The translations under genes were made by a program, and so were the position numbers. This document shows positions 3,631-32,129 of a stretch of DNA of 35,463 nucleotides, piece by piece. Source of the DNA: Octopus bimaculoides (Eukaryota); NCBI RefSeq assembly GCF_001194135.2, contig NC_068981.1, positions 26,426,233 to 26,461,695 of the forward strand. The letters run 5' to 3'. The notes under the pieces were generated by a model. That model saw nothing but the letters and a program-made list of their open reading frames with translations. It had not been told where the DNA came from and did no database searches. Numbering within the stretch: position 1 is the stretch's first letter; each line of letters opens with the position of its first letter.

Positions 3631-3910
3631 TGTTACTATTATTATCCCAGATCAGCCAAGATCGAGCAGTTCCATGATTAGCGGTTTCTGACCATGACCA
3701 AACGGTCCTTTTCTCTAATAGTGAGTACTGAGGACTACTGCACAATACATACATAAATCTACATTGATATAAGCGTATATACACACATACGTACGTACAC
3801 ATACGTACGTACACACACATACATGCGCACACACATACACATACACACACACATATACATATTTAATATATATGCACACACACTCGTACACATATATACA
3901 CATAAAGACA

Positions 3911-4138
3911 GAAACGTTAGCAGAAACGTTAGCACGCCGGGCGAAATGCTTAGCGGTATTTCGTCTGCCGCTACGTTCTGAGTTCAAATTCCGCCGAGGT
4001 CGACTTTGCCTTTCATCCTTTCGGGGTCGATTAAATAAGTACCAGTTACGCACTGGGGTCGATATAATCGACTTAATCCGTTTGTCAATCTGTGTTTGTC
4101 CCCTCTGTGTGTAGCCCCTTGTGGGTAGTAAAGAAATA
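3911..4138 (+). mobile_element. tRNA-derived SINE, family B1 (young, 5'-truncated, 13 bp TSD)
   Basis: B box GAGTTCAAATTCC, central ggtcgactttgcctttcatcctttcggggtcga domain, TSD acacataaagaca at 3898-3910 and 4139-4151. About 158 bp read as identical to the copy at 8298. Confidence 0.92.
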
Positions 4139-4350
4139 ACACATAAAGACATACACAAAACACACGTACAACCGATCTTACTCTGACAACATCATGTGAT
4201 CTACCATGACCATTAGCAGCGTATTTTCTGGTAACCATTTTGGACTTACTGTGTTTCTCCATTCGGTAAGCCAGGTTTGAACGGGACGGGTTCCGGTTAG
4301 ATGCCCGCGAAACTTTAAACCGATTGGAACCGAATCAAACTGTAGATTTC

Positions 4351-6162: not shown

Positions 6163-6328
6163 AGGCGCAGAAGTGGCTGTATGTTAAGTAACTTGCTTAG
6201 CAACCATATGGTTCCGGGTTCATTCCCACTGCGTGATACTTTGGGCAAGTGTCTTCTACTATAGCTTCGGGTCGACCAAAGCCTTGTGAGTGGATTTGGT
6301 TGACGGAAACTGAAAGAAGCCCGTCGTA

Positions 6329-6385
<57 letters not shown>

Positions 6386-7839: not shown

Positions 7840-7860
7840 GATGATGATGATAATAATAAC
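7798..7860. repeat. (AAT)n/(GAT)n microsatellite between the R4-like element and family D
   Basis: Read directly. Confidence 0.95.
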
Positions 7861-8662
7861 TGCCCTCATGCAGTACCAGAAGTGGCTCTCATTGCTTCTG
7901 ATCTTAAGTGACTGGAAGTGTTATCATGTACATTGTTTTGTCTTCGTATAAAAGGTGGGCTACAGTAAATATTCTGCCCAATACCACAGATTTGCTTCTC
8001 ATTTGAATGACGTTAACCATTTGAGCATGTCACTTGCTGGCTGACGATATGTGCATCTATGACTACGAGCAAAAGTATTGGGGAAGCATCATAGCCATGA
8101 GCTGAGAGGAATTCTTTGGGGTTTGAATAATTCACCTCTGGAAACATGTTTTCTTCATCATCCTTAAACAACCCTTATTCAAGAACCTTTTGAGAGGGGT
8201 GGGCTACTCAACCTGAGCAAAATTCTAACTGGGCCCCACCTGCAAAGTCATGCGCTGTTTATCTTGATATGAGATCACTATGGCATACGCATACATAAGG
8301 CGGCGAGCTGGCAGAAACGTTAGCACGCCGGGCGAAATGCTTAGCGGTATTTCGTCTGCCGCTACGTTCTGAGTTCAAATTCCGCCGAGGTCGACTTTGC
8401 CTTTCATCCTTTCGGGGTCGATTAAATAAGTACCAGTTACGCACTGGGGTCGATATAATCGACTTAATCCATTTCTCTGTCCTTGTTTGTCCCTTCTGTG
8501 TGTGTGTAGCCCCTTGTGGGTAGTAAAGAAATAACACAAACGGTTGTGATACATGTTCGTGGCTTACCCTTATCAGAAGCGTAATTATGATGGGTATACT
8601 GAGCTTCGAATATTTTTTTACCCCAGTGTCACTTTGATGGCATGCACTGCTCTCTTACTTAA
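7858..8662. mobile_element. Family D non-coding interspersed repeat, interrupted by a B1 SINE
   Basis: 7858-8296 plus 8534-8662 is the reverse complement of 16230-16745. No ORF; (AAT)n on the left and ataataata on the right. Confidence 0.85.
8298..8533 (+). mobile_element. tRNA-derived SINE, family B1, full length
   Basis: Head ggcggcgagctggcagaaacgttagc with A and B boxes, tail gccccttgtgggtagtaaagaaata. Nested in family D. Confidence 0.92.
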
Positions 8663-8914
8663 CCATAATAATAACCACGAACCTTGATATCAAGTGAAAA
8701 TGTCCAATACAAATGTACGGTATAATAATGCGGATGGGGTTGGAACCAACGTTGAAGGTCTTCTGCCCGGCAAGTACCCGGTCGTCTTCTAGAGACTGCT
8801 TACACTCAAAGCTAGAGGCAGAATAAAAGGTAAGACGAGGAGGCAAATCGAAATGTAACTGGGTGCTGGAAAAAATATTTGTCACCTTGGCTCGGCCTGA
8901 ATCATTAGGAAAGT

Positions 8915-9100
8915 TTTGTCACAAGGCCAGCGATTTCGTGGGGTGGGATGAAATCGATTACATTGACCCAGTGCTCAACTGGTACTTATCTTATCGACCC
9001 CGAATAGATTAAAGCCATATTCTACCTAGGCGGTATTTGAACTAAAATGGTAAAGACGAACCAAATGCCGTCAAGTATTTCGACCGTCGTACTAACATAT
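8915..9100 (-). mobile_element. SINE family B2, diverged
   Basis: Reverse complement contains ggggtcgataagataagtaccagttgagcactgggtcaatgtaatcga and the ggccttgtg tail. Confidence 0.7.
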
Positions 9101-11775
9101 TTGGCGTACCAAAGCAATCTCTTCCCGAATGTATTGCTTAACTCGAAATCACCTAACGGAAAAGTAACCCCCAACGATTTCCATGTGCGTTGACATTTAC
9201 GTACATTGATTTGCTTGTAATATATAAACTGATGAAAAATGTTTCACGTCACGGGATTCCATGTTACAGTAAAGTGTACAGTAACGCCAGTCTTCTCTTA
9301 AGCGTAATACCTTCAATAATATTGTAAGGCTGAATATGTATATATATTTTTTTTAGAAGTATGACAGTCAGAATCATTTATTGACGATTTCCGTATCTTC
9401 GCAAATTTTCGACAAATTGCTATGTCAAATACATAGCTTTTCTCTGAAATAAAACTTGTGTAATTCAATTTACATTTTTATATAGCTATAAACTGATCTT
9501 TTTTACGACTGAACGGAGGGGTTATTAGAAAATATGAATGATTTATTTTACTGCAGACGAATTTGATATTACAAAATCGGTCGTTTTGACACCAGTATAA
9601 GAAGAATACTGTCTCAACAGGCTATAAAAATAAATCTGGCAACAGAAAATTATATATAATTTTTTTGGTTAATGGTAATGTGATATTTGACGATGCAATG
9701 ATATCTATTAAGATAAACGCAGAAAAATAAGTGAATTATATGACTGTATTCTCGATATCACATAATTATTATACTTGTTCTCGGGCCAAAAATGAATAGC
9801 GTTTAGTAGAATGACTATTTTAGCAGATTAACAGTCGAATTAGATTGTACCAAAATGAATTGGACCACCTAGTTACGTGAGATCCCTATAGGCTATAAAT
9901 TTAAGCATTAACAACACATTGAAACTAACGAACATTTTGTTAGCTTGGGCTAACGTAAATGACATTTTCGTTTCTTATAGTGCCCGTATAACCGTTCAGT
10001 TATGGAACTCATTCATGGATTGAGGGGCTAATGAGTGTTAATGTTCTAATCCATCGTGTAAGGCCGAAACAAATAGAACTATGCACAAATTAAAAGCCAT
10101 ATGGGACTACGAGAAAGTTGTTATCTTCCTTCTGTCAAACGATAGATATATTGGTATAAAATTGAATTTAATCGTGATGTATTTATTTTTAATTATGAAT
10201 GGCCTGATAGACATCAAACAAGACACATGTACAGATATTTGGCTACAGAATAAATTTAATTTCGAGAATAAATTTCATTTCTGGACATATAAAAGGAAGG
10301 ATAAATTAATGATCTGTGAAACAAGAAGAGTAATTTCTACCCAGACTTAACTAATTTGTCTGTCTCATTTTCTTATGCCCTAGCCTCACTTCTGATAATT
10401 TACTTACAGTTCTTAATAGTGTCAACTACAGTTAGTTCTGAAATAGCTTTCTGAAAAGATCAATCACATTCGATCACCAAAGGACCTAACGCTTCAGTGA
10501 AAATCTTGAAAGGTACTTTAAATTACATCAGTGTATTGAAGATGATATAGAATTCACTGCTCTAAATAGAGGTTAATGACAATATTTTAATAATAAAAGA
10601 AATAGTTGCGAGCGCTGTAATGTTAGAGAAGTTTCCAATGAGCCGAATTAGAGATACGGTTCCGATTACTGGTTGTCAGCCATTTCATTTTACCTGCATC
10701 ACTGATTCTGTTTACCTTAAAATGTATAGGCTTATACCAATTTACGAAATTTACAAGAATATAAGTGTGGATGGATATTGTAGAAAGAGGTTAATAGATT
10801 CATGACTGTACTACTCTGTTACTAATCTAATTTTAATAAAAGTAGTAACAGTTTAATATATGTTATTGCATAGCGCCGATTCAGGACGGAAGTAGCAGAT
10901 CCAACGAATGGTTGTCCAGCTACAGACTCAACGATCCAATATACAATGCTTTTGTCTGTTTGAGAATTACGTTATACATCCCAACAGGCAAGACCGTAAT
11001 ATTTTGGGACACAGTGTGACATCTTGCATATTGGATTTTCGATTCTTTATATTATTTAACGTATAACTGCTAACTGTGAAGGTAGACACACCGGAAACTG
11101 TTAAGGATGTCTTCATCGGAATATTACTATTGATGTTCTTTTGAACTTATACTGGTCACGATGAACATCTCAGCAGGATTCACCAGACGTCTACATTTAT
11201 CGATGCCACTTCCGCTTTAGTATATATTTCGTGCTCATAGCATTTATCAGCACTGAACTGTATGGCAAGCGTTTTTACTATAACCCTGTATTAGTGTCAT
11301 AGGGCGTCATAGTCGTTTTTGTGTGTTAATGATTGAATATAATGGTAATGACTGTATATGTTGGATATTGCTGCGATAACAAAACGTTTTCAATGTATGT
11401 GCATGCGTATGGTGTTTCAGTATGGATAGTTTATAGAGGTGCTCTATGGTTGAGGTCAATTAGCAAATATTAATGATCCCAAGTGAGCTGTTCTGTGTTA
11501 TTTATACTACATTATGTATTATGTCTATACACAAATATTAATACACACTGGAAGTAGTGTGTTGTTTGTACTCCTCGTATACATATATTTGTAGTATGTA
11601 TGTATGTATGTATGTATGTGTGTATGTATATATATAATATATATCTATATACATATATATGGTTGTATAATGTATATATATATGCGTGTATATATGTATT
11701 GATAATAATAATAATATGACAACAAAAGAGTGAATGAGACCTCGATGTCATGTAAATAGAGGAATTTATCTATAA

Positions 11776-11948: not shown

Positions 11949-12870
11949 TGGCCATCATTTAAGAAAAGTAGGTTGACTGGTTCAGTGGCTGAGGGAGATT
12001 ACTAAGGTAAGTAGAGAGGTATGAGAGAGGGTAGAGGATGGTGAATGGAGTGAGTTAGTGTTCAATACAACAGTGGTTAGTGGGACAGTGGATTTAGGAT
12101 GGTATTGGAAGGGGAGTACAATGGTATGGAGAAGTGTATGAAATTAAATACACAGAAGTGAACAGGGAGGGAGATAGAAGTTGACAGGTTAGTATCCAAA
12201 GAGGTGGAACAGTATTAAGTACTTTTGGTAGGGAAGAGAAATAAGAGTGGGGAGACTACGAGGGAAGTTGGAAGTAGTGGTTTAGAAGAATTTTGAAAAG
12301 CAAGTATGAGAAAGAATAATTAAATAGGGGTAGATTTGTTGAGATGGTACGTTGCTAGGCTGACCTTGTCTTAGTTCAAGATTAATTTTGAGCATAGATA
12401 CTTATAGCTATGGGATTACATAAATTTAATAAAATGCGTGAATGATGCGTAGAACCTGTGCTTACAAGACAAATTTACATCTGAGAATCTATTAAGTAAT
12501 TAGGAGCTGTGGAAGCGAAGAATGGTTAGCGATTCTTTTAAACATAGTTTACACATAGTGATGTCTGCGTTGTATGTGAGAACCTCACTTACTATGGACC
12601 AGAGTAGGGTATGTGGAACAATTTGAGAGCTAAGGTTGTGTATATAGGTTGCTAAGAAAGTTGATAATTTAGAATTTGGATTGGAGAAAGAGTTCATGTG
12701 TGTACGGTAACGGCGTTTGAAATCAACGTACCGCCGATACATACCCTTGCTTGGTGGGAGTATGGTGTCATAACACGGCAGTTGTAGATTACATTTTTAG
12801 GTAGACAGAAGCCTCTAAGAGGGCATAGTTGAGAAACCCGGCAATTCCAAGTTCTCCTACCCGCTACGTG
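11949..12870 (-). mobile_element. Penelope-like retroelement remnant (Naiad-type GIY-YIG endonuclease plus pyrimidine-rich 3' UTR/pLTR)
   Basis: Minus strand: RTWNCRVSQLCPLRGFCLPKNVIYNCRV..VCIGGT / VDFKRRYRTHMNSF..STFLATYI..LLWSIV..YNADITMCKLCLKESLTIL..LLNRFSDVNLSCKHR (about 12870-12416), with one frameshift and one premature stop. Confidence 0.85.
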
Positions 12871-13600: not shown

Positions 13601-13852
13601 CGCACAGGCCTGGCTGAATAGTAAAAAGCTTGATTCTCAACAAAATGATTCTCGGTTCAGTCCCAGTGAGTGGCACTTTGGGCAACTGTCTTCTACTAAA
13701 GCCGCGGGCCGCCCAATGCTTTGTAGGTGGATTTAGTAGATGAAAGCTGAAAGAAACCTGTCGTGAGTGTGTGTGTATATATNNNNNNNNNNNNNNNNNN
13801 NNNNNNNNNNNNNNNNNNNNNNNNNNNNNNNNNNNNNNNNNNNNNNNNNNNN

Positions 13853-14977: not shown

Positions 14978-15566
14978 GTTGTTTTTTTCTTCTTTCTTCA
15001 AATTTTCTTCCATTTCTCGCCGAGTGTTTTCCGTACACCTAGGGCAGAGAAACTCGTTGTATGCATTCCCAGTTTACAAACGCAAATTCACAGTTAAAAC
15101 ATGTATTTAAGAAAAAAAAAAATTCATGAATGGATGTTGTTTTCACAGCGATAATGCTCTTCTCAGTACATGAGTCGTTCCAGTTAGCACGATTTTTTGC
15201 ACTTCGTGTAGGGATGGTTTGCCTGGTATCATTTTCAAATAGGTTTCAGTACCTTTTGTTTTTATCATTCCTAGAGATCCTACAATCACTGGTATGGTAG
15301 TCGCCTTGAGGTGCCACATTTTTTTCAATTTCTATTAGCAAGTCTTTATATTTACTGATCTTGTCAAATTCTTTCACCGCTATATTATGATCAGAGGGAA
15401 TACTCATGTCAATTAATAAACACGTCTTCTTTGTCTGATCTTTTAGAATAATATCCGGTTTATTAGCTTTTATAGCCTTGTCAGTATGTACGGGGAAGTC
15501 CCAGAGAATCGATACATTTTCTCCCTCAGTCACAGCTTCAGGATGGTGTTTATACCATTTGTCAGC
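14978..15566 (-). mobile_element. R4/Dong-like RLE retrotransposon 3' end (third, divergent lineage)
   Basis: ADKWYKHHPEAVTEGENVSILWDFPVHTDKAIKANKPDIILKD..LLIDMSIP../MWHLKATTIPVIVGSLG..VLRRALSL, with a frameshift in the T-run near 15320. 3' UTR of ~165 bp then (TAA)n at 14954-14977; the 5' side runs into a gap. Confidence 0.9.
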
Positions 15567-15811: not shown

Positions 15812-15813
<2 letters not shown>

Positions 15814-15968
15814 GGCGGCAAAGAGTTCAAATTTCGCCGAACTAGACTTTGCCTTTCATCCTTCGGGGTCGAAAAAAAGGAACCAGTCAAGTACTGAGAT
15901 CAATGTGATCGACTTACTGCACCTCGCCTCAAATTTCAGGCCTTGTGCCTATAGTACAAAGGATTATT
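15812..15968 (+). mobile_element. SINE family B2 with internally deleted head
   Basis: aaggcggc is joined directly to gagttcaaat; gactttgcctttcatcc domain; tail aaatttcaggccttgtgcctatagtacaaaggattatt. Confidence 0.8.
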
Positions 15969-16195
15969 AAGGCGGCGAGCTGGCAGTGTCATGGCACGCT
16001 GGATAAAATGCTTAATGTTATTTCGCCCGTCAGTACGTTCTAGGATCAAAATCCGCCGAGGCCGACTTTGCCTTTCATTATTTCGGGGTCGATTGAAAGA
16101 GTAGCAGTCAAGCGATGGGGTTGATATAATCGACTATCCCCTCCCTGAAAAAATTGTGCCTATGGTAAAAAAAGATTATTATTATTATTATTATT
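15969..16195 (+). mobile_element. SINE family B2 with (ATT)n tail
   Basis: ggcggcgagctggcag head, ccgccgaggccgactttgcctttca domain, ttgtgcctatgg..gattattatt tail. Confidence 0.85.
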
Positions 16196-16229
16196 TTATG
16201 TTTGACTTTTGTTTTGCATNNNNNNNNNN

Positions 16230-16745
16230 ATTGAGTGAGAGAGTAGTGCATGCCATCAAAGTAACACTGGGGTAAAATATACGAAGCCCAGTATTCTCAT
16301 CACCAGGCACATGCATCACAACCACATGTGCGTGACACGGTGATCTCATATCAAGATAAACAGCACATAAACTTGCAGATGGGGCCCAGTTAGAATTTTC
16401 TTCCGGTCGAGTAACCCATCCCGCTCAAAAGGTTCCTGAATAAGTGCAGTTTAAGGAAGTTGAACGCAACACCCATGTTTCCAGAGGTGAATTATCCAAA
16501 CCCCAAAGAATTCCTCTCAACGCATGGCTACGATGCTTTTCCACTATTTCTGATCTTTTCAGAGATGCATATATCGTCAGTTACTAAGGGACATGTTCAA
16601 CTGACAATCAAATCTGTGGTGTTGAGCAGAATATGTGCTGTAGACCACCTTTTATACAAAGATAAAAGAATGTACATGATAACACTTCCAGTCAGTTAAG
16701 ATGAGAAGCTATGAGAACCACTGCCTGGTACTGCATCAGAGCATT
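16230..16745. mobile_element. Family D repeat, near complete
   Basis: Reverse complement of 7858-8662; followed by (ATC)n(ATT)n. Confidence 0.85.
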
Positions 16746-16746
16746 T

Positions 16747-16787
<41 letters not shown>

Positions 16788-16810
16788 TATTATTATTATT
16801 ATTATTATTA

Positions 16811-17110
16811 TTGAGTGTAAGGGCATTGACTACCATCACAGTGACACTGTGGTACTAATATACGAAACTCAATGTACCTATCATGACTATCCCTCAGATA
16901 AGAACACACCAGGCACATGCATCACAGCCATATGTGCGCGACATAATGATCTCATATTTAAACAAACAACGCATAATCTTGCTGGTGGGGTCCAGATAGA
17001 ATTTTGTTCTGGTCGATTAGCCAATTCTACTCAAAAGGTCCCTGAATACGTGTTGCTTAATGCCGTTGAACGAAATACCTATGTTTCCAAAGGTGAATTA
17101 TTCAAACCCC
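16811..17110. mobile_element. Family D repeat, truncated tandem copy
   Basis: Diverged direct repeat of 16230-16505 (caccaggcacatgcatcaca..ggtgaattattcaaacccc). Confidence 0.8.
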
Positions 17111-17722
17111 AGACGGATCCGTCCGTCATCCGAGTTTGTAGTGATGATCGCACCGCCACTCTACTTCAATCAGGCAGGCAAGGCTGTTTTTCTTTGTCTG
17201 GTGGTTGTGGCGAAAAAGGTTGTTTGGTGGACAAGGCTGAAAGGCCTGAGGACAGATACATTCTTCTTTGGCAGAGCTCTCATTGACTTCTTCAAGTTTC
17301 ACTTCAAAAGGAAATTGAGAGTGAAGAGGGAAGTGCTGTCCTCGGGTGAGTTTATCGAAAGGTGGGTGAAAGTTGCGAAAATGGCAAGAGTGAATGTTAC
17401 CTCTCTAAGTCTAGACCTGTGAATCGGAGAGAAGGAATTCGAAATGACACTTGCTCCTGGGTTTTCAGTGAAATCTCGGACAGTGGGGTTCCTCGATTAT
17501 CCCTCGAGGCCTTCCTGTATCAGGACAGCCACAATCTTACCATCTTCACTGCCACTTTTTTTAAAAACCTTTGCATGCTATTCATATGTTCCTTCTTTTT
17601 CAGTGAATACTTTCTTTCTTTCATTTTTTTTTTTATCATTTCATATGTAAACCCCAACACTTCATGTCTGTCTTTGGATTGCCCCCCCCCTCATCTTTCG
17701 CCCTTGTGGCAAGTAAATGTAA
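17111..17722 (+). mobile_element. Tx1/L1-clade non-LTR retrotransposon 3' end (ORF2 C-terminus plus 3' UTR)
   Basis: FLCLVVVAKKVVWWTRLKGL..LIDFFKFHFKRKLRVKREVLSSGEFIERW fits the AK..W..R..F...W pattern of Tx1-type ORF2 C-termini. Stop at 17422, ~300 bp pyrimidine-rich UTR, then (ATT)n. Confidence 0.68.
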
Positions 17723-17760
17723 TCATTATTATTATTATTATTTTGTTTGTTATTATTACT

Positions 17761-17962
17761 GAAGCAGCGAGCTAATAGAATTTTTAGCTCATCGGGCAAA
17801 ATCGCATTTACGTTCTGAGTTCAAATACCGCAGAGGTCGACTTTGCTTTTCATCTTTTGGGGGTCGGCAAAATAAGTACCAGTTGAGTGTTGTGGTTGAT
17901 GAAATTGATTTGTCCCCTTCTCCGAAATAGCTGGCCTTGTGCCAAAATTAGAAACCATTATT
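17761..17962 (+). mobile_element. SINE family B2, diverged
   Basis: ttctgagttcaaataccgcagaggtcgactttgcttttcatc..ggccttgtgcc..ccattatt. Confidence 0.8.
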
Positions 17963-20328: not shown

Positions 20329-20979
20329 CTATAGAGATATATAGATATATACATACACATATAAATACATACATAAACATATATACATACATACATACAT
20401 ACACACACATACACATATATATATATATACATACATGCATACATACATACAAACATACATACATAAATACATACATACATAGATACATACATACATATAT
20501 ACATATACACAGACATATACGAAGCACAATGCAACTGATTGTACTTCCTTTACCAAATGCTAGAGATAAATATTGGTGCATGCGCACGCACTCGCACACA
20601 CACACACATACACACGCATACACAAACACACTCACACCTACTTATGTACATGCACATATATATTCACATAAGTAAGAGTAAATATCTGGTATATTTCTTC
20701 TTAATACAACTGATAGTTGAGGTTGCTTGTTTAGATAAAACAACTGATATATATTTTTTCTGCACAAGACAATCATAAAAACAAACGAACGCTTTATTTC
20801 TTCTGTTAACAAAGCAGAAACAATTACCTAAAAAGTAACATTTATTGATTCATACAAAACATTTGCCGTTTGAAATATAGAAATGTTAAAACCAAGAAGA
20901 ATATATTAATATACATTTATATTAAGTTATTCTGCTAAGGCGCTGAATAGATGGCACTAACGCATTGTAATAGGCAACA

Positions 20980-21190
20980 AACTGACATAATCGTTTGCAC
21001 ACTGAGCAAATCGCATAGCAGTATTTCGTTCGTCTTTATGTTCTCAGCTCAGATTCCACCGAGGTCGACTTTGCTTTTCATCCTTCACGTTCCATAAAAT
21101 AAGTACTTGTTGGATACTGGAATTGTTGTAATTGACTTAACCATTCTCACCAAAATTTCAGGCTTTGTGCCTAGCGTAGAAAAGGCTATT
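20980..21190 (+). mobile_element. SINE family B2, diverged
   Basis: ccaccgaggtcgactttgcttttcatcc..aaataagtac..aaaatttcaggctttgtgcctagcgtagaaaagg. Confidence 0.8.
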
Positions 21191-21206
21191 AAAACATTGA
21201 ATCATG

Positions 21207-29837: not shown

Positions 29838-30191
29838 ATCTTTTATTCTTTTATTTGTTTATTCTTTTATTTGTTTCAGTCATTTCACTCCGGCCATGCT
29901 AAAGTACCACCTTTAGTCGAGCAAATCGACACCAGGACTTATTCTTTTTAAGCCTAGTACTTATTTTATCGGTTATCTTGCCGAACCGCGATGTTGGAGG
30001 GACAGACAAAGACACACAAACATATATATACATACGACGGGCTTCTTTCAGTTTTCGTCTACCAAATCCACTCATAAGGCTTTGGTCAGCCCGAGGCTAT
30101 AGTAGAAGACACTTGCCCAAGTTGTCACGCAGTGGGACTGAACCCGGTTCCATGTGGTTGGTAAGCAAGCTACTTACCACACAGTCACTCT
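29838..30191 (-). mobile_element. SINE family A with ~40 bp internal deletion
   Basis: Reverse complement of 6163-6610, lacking the segment between gccgaaccgc and gatgttgg. Confidence 0.88.
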
Positions 30192-32129
30192 ATTGCTTCG
30201 TTTTCAGAAAGAGGGAGAATTACGTAAGATGATGTACGTATTAGGTTCATTTAATTCAATATAAAATTATAATGAATGATACTTAATTATTTTCTGTCTA
30301 ATACCGCTTAGATATTTCAAACTCCAGCACTCTTTTAATCCTAGTTTGAACCATTTTAGTTATTCTGCCTGTTTGTTTGTGAGCCTTAATGGCCAACGGG
30401 TTACAAGTGGCTCTCATCCCTGATCTAAGTTCGAATAAGCAGCCTCTTGATAAAACAAGCCGCACAGAGATTAGTTAAAAAAGGAGCAGTAAAAAGAAGA
30501 AAGCTATAAAATTATTTAGAAACCTGGCACGGAAATTATTTCGAAAGATTCGGCCGTCTGGTTAACTGCTTCGAGCTTTAACAGGAAAATAATTAGATTC
30601 CATTCATTCTTATTTTATTCTACATTATATGTATCACAGTCATCATTTTATTTCATTCTGCAACTTTCTTAGAACGAGGCAATATAAAACATACCTTTCC
30701 CTTCGCCTCCTTCTCCATTGTCATCGTTGTCTGTGTTGTCTGACCCGATACAAATTTATGCAATCTCAGTGACTGCACTGAAGATGCAAAATATGCTGAA
30801 ACAAACATTTTCAGATTTTAAGATCATTAAATATTGAATATCAAAAAGTGTATCACCTTTAATTACTATTGACTTGTCTTTAATAATTCAAGAATAAAGC
30901 ATTTCTCATTTACTTCGTCATTTATGCACTAACACTTATGTTATCTCTCTATAGGTATCTCTATGTATGTATGTATGTATGTATGTATGTATGCATGTAT
31001 GTATGTATGTATGTATGTATGCGTGAATGTATGGTGTGATTAGCTTGTGGCCTGCGTCTGCGTATTCTTAAGTTCAATACTTTGCTTTAAACAATCTCGA
31101 CGAAAATCCTGCTGTACCTATCTAGTGTGCGTGAAGAATTTAAATTTTTTAAAATTTTGTATGGCATATTTATCTGCAATGCATAATACTAATATAACGA
31201 GATATCTATGTTAAAGGTATACCATCATTATCAACTGTCTGTAAATGATAATGCATTATTTTTAATAATATATATAGTTACACGTTAGTTTTATTTTTCT
31301 CTTTTCTCTCCATTTTGTTGCTAACTGAATTCCATTAGTCATTAAGTTTGGTCAAACACAGAACGTATAGCATCTTGGCTCAAACATTACTTATAAATTG
31401 ATAACCAAAGCATGAGCCACGACTTTATATTTTCTCCAAGCATTTGCATTGATTTTATTTTTATGGAACTGATTCCAGAAATCAATACTCCTTGTTTTCT
31501 TATCTTAATTTAATTTTTAGTTTATATTTCTATATCACCCTTTAGTCTTAGATTAATATCTTTCGCAATTAGTTTTAGATCGAAATTTTACGACCCTCCT
31601 CGGTATTTGATTAAGAGAGTCAATAATATTGCTGATTAACAACCAAAGTGTTAAAGTTAAAGGCTCAAGGTCATGACACACAATTTTCGTTGTTGTTTTA
31701 GTTTACTACCAGTTGAACGCTAACAGTACAGACATGACAGTCTCTGAATATTTCAGCCATTACTTCATCGTCCTTCGCTTGAACATGGATTATCTGGGAG
31801 TACATTATTTGTCGTGTGATTCTCTATCATGATTTGTGCTACCTGAGATTAATTTGGCTGCGATGTCTTACAAGTCGAATCAACATGTAATGTCTTCTCC
31901 GCTTGTCGTCTCGTCGATTTCTGACCAAGGCACTAGGCCAATGTTTGACGAGGAAGCACGTTCGATTTAAGAGGCTTCACTTATACATACATATTATTTA
32001 TTGCACTTACGTTATAAAAGAAAACACTGCACTAAAATAAGCCTTGCACATATTTGTCTCACATACCGGCGTTCAGTTGTGCAATGGAATCAGCCATAAC
32101 AAGAGAAATACTGAACAATAATAGTTTCT

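Follow-up and report, generated by a model that had tools for sequence, protein, structure and literature searches.

The SINE B1 of Octopus bimaculoides ends in a tail that is homologous to the 3' end of a LINE, and the homologous stretch is terminal in both elements. We put the probability at about 0.8 that this reflects a tail-sharing partnership between B1 and a LINE of the L1 superclade, most probably of Tx1 type, that carries a conserved terminal box. The window, which is the whole 35.5-kb stretch of DNA that was analysed, is AT-rich and contains many N gaps and dense interspersed repeats. A sequence-only reading of the window had proposed that the tail of B1 matches the end of the LINE, and this proposal was examined here with copies of the LINE from other octopods and from metagenomes.

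The LINE copy and its clade

By repeat comparison, the LINE family is represented by a single copy in the window. An open frame on the plus strand (17113-17422) comprises the last 103 codons of ORF2 and a stop codon at 17420-17422, and it was recognised by homology to the protein P0152; the encoded peptide has 69% amino acid identity to the last 101 residues of P0152 and the same stop. The adjoining repeat of about 580 bp, which is unrelated to the LINE, loses homology at 17111. Downstream of the stop codon lies a 3' UTR of about 300 nt (17423-17723, plus strand), which aligns with the 3' UTRs of six other copies of the LINE and ends in ...gcccttgtggcaagtaaatgtaat, with its last base at 17723. 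The frame, the 3' UTR and the C-terminal match to P0152 indicate that 17113-17723 is a 5'-truncated LINE copy, and this copy belongs to a P0152-like subfamily. The terminal box that the LINE has in common with the SINE tails occupies 17670-17723 on the plus strand (E 6e-4 and 2e-4 in nhmmer searches with two profiles made solely of outside LINE ends). It is followed on the same strand by a microsatellite tail, c and (ATT)6, which was read directly at 17724-17742. The sequences were found where the sequence-only reading had placed them, but the LINE end that it gave, 17722, is one base short.

An exhaustive HMMER protein search with the 104-aa remnant of the LINE found 154 relatives, and a word-index protein search with the same remnant gave no match. 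Among the protein relatives, those of Octopus sinensis and Argonauta hians are the best. P0153, a close relative of the octopod LINE ORF2, is encoded on a 1.8-kb contig and has the NCBI title 'MAG: zinc-binding domain-containing protein [Herbaspirillum sp.]'. This bacterial label is almost certainly due to contamination of a bacterial bin by host (cephalopod-like) DNA. Contigs of such LINE sequence are also present in the JGI metagenomes 3300045642 and 3300045673.

Pfam searches revealed that relatives with longer ORFs have RVT_1 and zf-RVT domains and that full-length relatives have Exo_endo_phos, RVT_1 and zf-RVT domains. P0170 is colinear with human L1 ORF2p over residues 9-875 (E 9e-69), whereas its matches to R2 proteins are at 5e-16 or weaker, and P0069 gives E 2e-47 to human L1 ORF2p versus 2e-19 to R2, in an L1-versus-R2 comparison set made up without CR1, L2, RTE and I proteins. 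The endonuclease of P0170 also matches crystal structures of L1 endonuclease. At the Argonauta locus L126, a near full-length element consists of ORF1 (482 codons), an endonuclease ORF, an ORF with RT and zf-RVT, and a 3' UTR. Its ORF1 contains a knuckle, CFICQKPGHLKSVC, with the pattern C-X2-C-X4-H-X4-C; the Pfam score of this ORF1 for zf-CCHC is 17.7 bits, under the cut-off of 20.8 bits, and Pfam gave no match to Transposase_22 in it. It has been reported that ORF1 variants with RRM/CCHC (Type I-like) in non-mammalian animals fit the Tx1 clade (Ivancevic et al., PMC5203782). In an RT-based survey of molluscs, Tx1 was the L1-like clade (PMC10294476), and 13 families of L1-Tx1 have recently been active in O. 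vulgaris (PMC13282606).

The endonuclease, RT and zinc domains, the colinearity with L1 ORF2p and the CCHC-containing ORF1 thus point to the L1 superclade (L1 and Tx1), a placement that is well supported by these comparisons. Within the superclade, Tx1 type is probable from the CCHC knuckle of ORF1 and from the mollusc and octopus surveys; none of the record names of the LINE relatives bears a Tx1 or L1 label. The earlier view that the LINE is L1-like and does not belong to L2, CR1 or RTE is supported by the Exo_endo_phos, RVT_1 and zf-RVT architecture and by its colinearity with human L1 ORF2p.

The B1 tail and the LINE 3' end

B1 is found in two copies in the window, both on the plus strand. 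Copy 1 (8297-8533), detected by BLAST, is near full length and has a head, a CORE-like body and a LINE-type tail at 8485-8532. It sits within another repeat (7844-8662, minus strand), and its target-site duplication is ambiguous. Copy 2 (3911-4138), detected by BLAST with 95% identity to copy 1, is 5'-truncated and has its tail at 4086-4137; on either side of it, at 3898-3910 and 4139-4151, stands ACACATAAAGACA, a perfect target-site duplication of 13 bp. The tails end at 8532/8533 and 4137/4138, a variant ending in ...GCCCCTTGTGGGTAGTAAAGAAAT, and no ATT repeat follows the tail in these copies. B1 has a B-box-like GAGTTCAAATTCC and a body, ...gcctttcatcctttcggggtcgattaaataagtaccag, which we take to resemble the MIR core. 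Neither ARAGORN nor Rfam found a tRNA in the head of the window SINE copy. From its sequence, B1 appears to be composed of a tRNA-type head with a B box, a CORE-like body, and a LINE box as its last ~50 nt.

Within the window, the best local alignment of the LINE end with the B1 tail, CCCTTGTGGnnAGTAAA, matches at 15 of 17 bases. This is equalled by about 1.2-1.7% of dinucleotide shuffles and by 1.4% of other window segments, and the window LINE copy gives a z of 3.1 with B1. Other copies of the LINE were fetched via their proteins, namely L001 from O. sinensis, L123 from JGI, L125 and L126 from Argonauta, and L128 from Logan. The first nhmmer profile combined the 3' ends of three outside LINE copies (from O. 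sinensis, Argonauta hians and one metagenome contig). When the whole window was searched on both strands, this profile matched 4086-4136 (E 2.7e-6), 8485-8531 (E 1e-4) and 17670-17722 (E 6e-4), and the next-best match in the window had an E of 7.7. With a profile of six copies, the two B1 tails gave E 6e-7 and 2e-5 and the window LINE end gave E 2e-4. All three matches finish at the 3' terminus of the profile. A weak profile match at 30364-30396 (E 0.5) was also inspected as a further tail and is not one. Pairwise comparison of the O. sinensis LINE L001 with B1 gave an alignment of 50-56 nt that reaches the final base (z 9.1 and 12.8), none of 2000 shuffles being as good, and the Argonauta LINE gives a z of 8.8 with B1. 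A scan of metagenome DNA with the 14-base pattern CCCTTGTGGNNANTAAA gave 120 matches, which were chance ones and included no cephalopod DNA.

It is the profiles of outside LINE ends and the pairwise z values, not the comparison in the window by itself, that lead us to regard the B1 tail as truly LINE-derived, as judged from these alignments. Thus, the proposal of a homology between the B1 tail and the LINE 3' end, at the terminus of each element, holds, and the alignment between them is real through the outside LINE copies, but it is marginal within the window (p about 0.012-0.017). The window LINE copy itself matches B1 poorly, and an O. sinensis subfamily is much closer. This P0157-like subfamily of O. 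sinensis, and not the P0152-like copy of the window, is on present sequences the best candidate for the LINE that would drive B1.

We also compared the tail of the related SINE B2. Its copies, identified by BLAST and by reading of their tails, lie at 15812-15969 (plus strand, with an internal deletion and the tail ...ggccttgtgcctatagtacaaaggattatta), 15969-16196 (plus, ending in (ATT)n), 17760-17962 (plus, close downstream of the LINE, tail ...ctggccttgtgccaaaattagaaaccattatt), 8905-9110 (minus, tail ...ctggccttgtgacaaaac) and 20975-21191 (plus, tail ...caggctttgtgcctagcgtagaaaaggctatta). BLAST showed that the head and body of B2 have 75-89% identity to those of B1 to about position 175-184 and that the two SINEs are divergent beyond. 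B2 tails are of the types ...ggccttgtgcctatagtacaaaggattatt or ...ggccttgtgccaaaattagaaaccattatt, with a variant ending in ...GGCCTTGTGCCAAAATTAGAAACC. The similarity of the B2 tail to the LINE tail is not significant (profile E 5.5; pairwise p 0.05-0.08), and these values rule it out as a significant relative of the LINE tail. B2 had been described as having a different tail; this is right in so far as its similarity to the LINE is not significant, but B2 tails, like the LINE tail, bear the motif GGC-CTTGT-GCC together with A-rich sequence, and they end in (ATT)n. From their sequences, B2 tails may match other subfamilies of the LINE.

Other repeats of the window lie around these elements. 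A repeat family of about 580 bp that ends in (ATC)n(ATT)n is found at 16230-16810, 16805-17111 and 7844-8662 (minus); one of its copies is split by a B1 SINE and another is cut off by the LINE fragment. The Logan copy of the LINE family studied here likewise ends in (ATC)n. At 15143-15533 (minus), two overlapping ORFs read ...ILWDFPVHTDKAIKANKPDIILKD...CLLIDMSIPSDHNI...KYKDL..., and we take these to resemble the C-terminal restriction-like-endonuclease region of R2/NeSL/Hero-type LINEs and to be a fragment of a different LINE. Pfam gave no match here, nor on any of ten ORFs of the window other than that of the LINE. Short repeats of another family lie at 6172-6339, 13611-13782 and 30022-30189 (minus) and include, on one strand, a tRNA-like segment, ggttcagtcccactgcgtgacaacttgggcaagtg; this family is probably a second SINE, perhaps of the tRNA-Deu type reported for octopus.

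The terminal box among octopods

The consensus of the box is ...tgt(n)tgtcccctct(a/g)tgtt(n)ggCCCTTGTGGCTAATAAAGAAAT(C/A), about 35-55 nt in length, and it is followed by a variable (ATT)n or (ATC)n. When seven LINE 3' UTRs are aligned, pairwise identity averages 0.68 over the terminal ~31 columns and 0.45 upstream of them. Such conservation of the terminus above the rest of the 3' UTR is expected if the box is functional. A possible 4-bp hairpin, GGCC-CUUGU-GGCU, lies in the box, and its loop is the most conserved segment. Compensatory variants of this hairpin are few (GCCC/GGGU in B1, GACC/GGUC in one Argonauta LINE and GGCC/GGCC in L123), several breaks are one-sided, and the folding energies are no better than those of shuffles; the putative hairpin is thus a weak hypothesis.

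SINE and LINE ends have in common a box of 35-56 nt. They read GAAAT(C/A), to which (ATT)n or (ATC)n may be added, and poly(A) terminates neither element. Because poly(A) is absent and the box is common to both, these ends do not fit poly(A)-dependent relaxed mobilisation of the kind known for Alu and rodent B1. Two further conserved islands were noted in the LINE 3' UTR (window ~17478-17500, L123 ~1815-1870, and L125, L126 and L124). One, GTGGGGTTCC, is retained in the window copy. The other, CCCCCCTATTGGGGA(T/A)TT, is present in outside copies and is not recognisable in the window copy; judged from its bases, it could form a CCCC-UAUU-GGGG hairpin. The SINEs carry neither island.

The box ends a 3' UTR that is continuous with ORF2 in eight LINE copies (the window copy, L001, L123, two at L125, two at L126, and L128), which come from the window, O. 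sinensis, Argonauta hians, one JGI contig and one Logan contig; the sequences of L129 and L002 stop short of the LINE tail. The terminal sequence of the fetched copies is ...G(G)CCCTTGTGGC(T/C)AATAAA(A)GAAAT, after which (ATT)n or (ATC)n usually comes. In two Argonauta loci of 21-22 kb, the profile matches more than 25 further elements, all of which end at the profile terminus, and over all loci searched there are 42 box-ended elements, including 7 LINE ends. At least two types of Argonauta SINE end in the box. Type 1 is ~240-260 nt long and has a CORE-like body (gcctttctttcgggatcgataaaacaagtaccagtg), and type 2 is ~120-160 nt long and simple tRNA-like, with some copies in tandem; the short SINE gives sub-threshold tRNA matches of 18-19 bits. 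The tails of the Argonauta SINEs, ...ttctgtgttcggcccttgtggctaatagagaaatc, are identical to the local LINE end at 34 of 35 nt (z 15-16). About a dozen SINE copies have clear target-site duplications of 9-17 bp that start directly after GAAATC (14 elements were listed with duplications, a few of which are low-complexity matches or LINE ends). The duplications mostly begin with TATT, TTAT or ATTT.

Two arrangements in Argonauta bear on how copies come to lie next to each other. At L125 5001-5365, three short tRNA-type SINEs are arranged head to tail, each ending in GAGAAATC and (C/T)ATTT. This tandem array could have arisen by insertion into the ATT-like end of an earlier copy or by local duplication. 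At L126 12011-12660, the end of a full-length LINE (12285) is followed ~130 nt on by another copy of that 3' UTR, which is 5'-truncated and ends at 12650; this suggests nested or adjacent insertion near existing tails.

The presence of the box on both CORE-type and simple tRNA-type SINEs in Argonauta suggests that the partnership is broad and old among octopods. It had been proposed that a single tail swap placed a young SINE on the LINE. This describes the data less well, since the same box ends at least two types of Argonauta SINE; judging from these sequences, the tail is the common 3' end of several octopod SINE families rather than the product of a single recent swap. As to the ages of the partners, the two B1 copies are 95% identical, and long open LINE ORFs exist (P0168, 912 aa).

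Recognition of the box and its alternatives

We propose that the pol III transcript of the SINE offers the box to the ORF2 protein of the LINE in trans. The ORF2 protein would recognise the box on its own RNA and on the SINE RNA, and it would nick T/A-rich target DNA, as the TATT, TTAT and ATTT starts of most duplications suggest. Reverse transcription would begin at or just past the box, and slippage or annealing on the ATT unit would yield from 0 to more than 30 repeats. The outcome would be dispersed SINE copies with target-site duplications of 9-17 bp. From the conservation of the box among these sequences, we infer that 3'-end recognition is of the 'stringent type', as opposed to poly(A)-only recognition. 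The sequence-only reading had likewise assumed sequence-specific 3' recognition: the homology and conservation of the box speak for it, whereas the recognition step itself is deduced from that conservation.

Other explanations have to be weighed against this proposal. The likeness of two short T/G-rich 3' ends could be due to chance, and the comparison within the window, in which the best alignment covers 15 of 17 nt at p about 0.012-0.017, would leave some room for this. However, profiles of outside LINE ends single out the B1 tails in 35 kb with E down to 6e-7, and the pairwise z is 9-16 with other LINE copies, the matches being registered to the last base. Chance is already refuted by these results, and we give it a negligible probability. 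It is also very improbable that the direction was reversed, the LINEs having gained a SINE tail, or that SINE fragments merely adjoin LINE ends. SINE insertions are dense at these loci, and one Argonauta LINE end is trailed by a second truncated LINE end, which would speak for such an artefact; but in none of the LINE copies is ORF2 separated from the box by a SINE head or CORE, the homology among LINEs extends about 110 nt or more upstream of the box, and six copies, which represent at least three genera or samples, have the box at a similar distance from the stop codon (roughly 215-300 nt).

Two further alternatives concern the recognition step and the name of the clade. The tail could be shared while recognition is relaxed. 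The enzyme would then need no more than the (ATT)n or A-rich run at the terminus, much as poly(A) suffices for mammalian L1, and the box would merely have been inherited. LINE copies that end in long (ATT)n or (ATC)n, TATT-like duplication starts that fit annealing of the repeat to the nicked target, and a hairpin without thermodynamic support would all be in keeping with this. It is nevertheless unlikely, because the B1 copies and the L001 LINE inserted without an ATT repeat (B1 copy 2 with a clear duplication), conservation at the 3' end of the UTR is highest in the box, and several mutually unrelated SINE bodies of two octopod lineages retain it. A partnership that is real, with a LINE that is L1 proper or an unnamed L1-like lineage instead of Tx1, is a less probable reading than Tx1, though the most serious of the alternatives. 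The only solved relative is human L1 ORF2p, and many Tx1 families are specific for a target sequence (PMC4494074), whereas strict target-site specificity was not seen among the octopod copies, whose duplications differ and have only a T/A-rich, TATT-like start in common. Against this, ORF1 has a CCHC knuckle and no match to Transposase_22, mollusc RT phylogenies give Tx1, and octopus annotation gives L1-Tx1.

The common-tail model is the established view of trans mobilisation (PMC3747384). Partners with a common tail are typical of L2, CR1 and RTE, and within the L1 group, a monocot L1 lineage and Chlamydomonas have provided examples (PMC3472496, PMC3747384). The octopod pair resembles UnaL2/UnaSINE1 of the eel (Kajikawa and Okada 2002; PMC3747384) in that the terminal bases of the SINE are homologous to the end of the LINE 3' UTR and in that a short repeat follows the box, TGTAA in UnaL2 and ATT in the octopod LINE. 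However, UnaL2 belongs to the L2 clade and its stem-loop was defined experimentally, whereas the octopod LINE is L1/Tx1-like and known from sequence, and its hairpin is weakly supported. The maize and sorghum SINEs with monocot L1 and SINEX-3_CR with L1-1_CR of Chlamydomonas likewise carry a conserved 3' end of the L1 superclade on a SINE, but these plant and green-algal pairs end in poly(A), whereas the octopod case is from an animal and ends in (ATT)n or nothing (PMC3472496, PMC3747384).

Crocodilian SINEU, with Tx1-Mar, is a SINE that has been assigned to a LINE of the Tx1 clade (PMC4494074). In contrast to the octopod link, which is the 3' tail, that assignment was made by a common target (Mariner-N4_AMi) and by snRNA-derived 5' parts that the two have in common; a LINE resembling SINEU-1 in its 3' half was not found (PMC4494074), and the octopod elements differ from SINEU/Tx1-Mar in lacking strict target specificity. 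In its tRNA-type head, central body and lineage-specific tail derived from a LINE, B1 resembles the CORE-SINEs (MIR/L2, Ther-2, Mar-1, and OR1/OR2 of Ohshima and Okada 1994; PMC4824008, PMC4758252, PMC3531059). OR1/OR2 of octopus are themselves CORE-SINEs (PMC4824008, PMC4758252, PMC3531059), and octopus SINEs are annotated mainly as tRNA-Core and tRNA-Deu (PMC8967140). The searched literature, with Repbase and Dfam annotations outside the search, contains no statement that assigns the tail of an octopus CORE-SINE to an L1/Tx1 LINE. The partnership is an instance of the familiar common-tail phenomenon of SINEs and LINEs, and the conceptual advance is modest.

In octopus genomes, roughly a tenth of the sequence or more consists of SINEs (11.6% in O. 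vulgaris, PMC13282606), and their expansion is considered peculiar to the octopus lineage (PMC8967140). The LINE that drives octopus SINEs is unnamed in the searched literature, and the assignment based on the tail provides a concrete, plausible driver of this expansion, of L1/Tx1 type. It also brings an animal case to the small group of L1-superclade LINEs that apparently need a specific 3' sequence and not poly(A). A wider and more tentative idea, which we hold to be possible though somewhat short of an even chance, is that one L1/Tx1 lineage with a box of ~35-55 nt (GGCCCTTGTGGCTAATAAAGAAAT and the ATT unit) drives most of the large SINE expansions in octopods (CORE-type, simple tRNA-type and possibly B2 via sister LINE subfamilies) and that this predates the split of Argonauta and Octopus. 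If this is true, stringent 3'-end recognition in the L1 superclade would have an example among animals. For plant L1-clade LINEs, Ohshima reportedly proposed that stringent recognition is ancestral and was later relaxed, as in mammalian L1. A single octopod lineage of this kind would bear on that proposal, and the octopod partnership has a bearing on whether the L1 group started out with stringent recognition.
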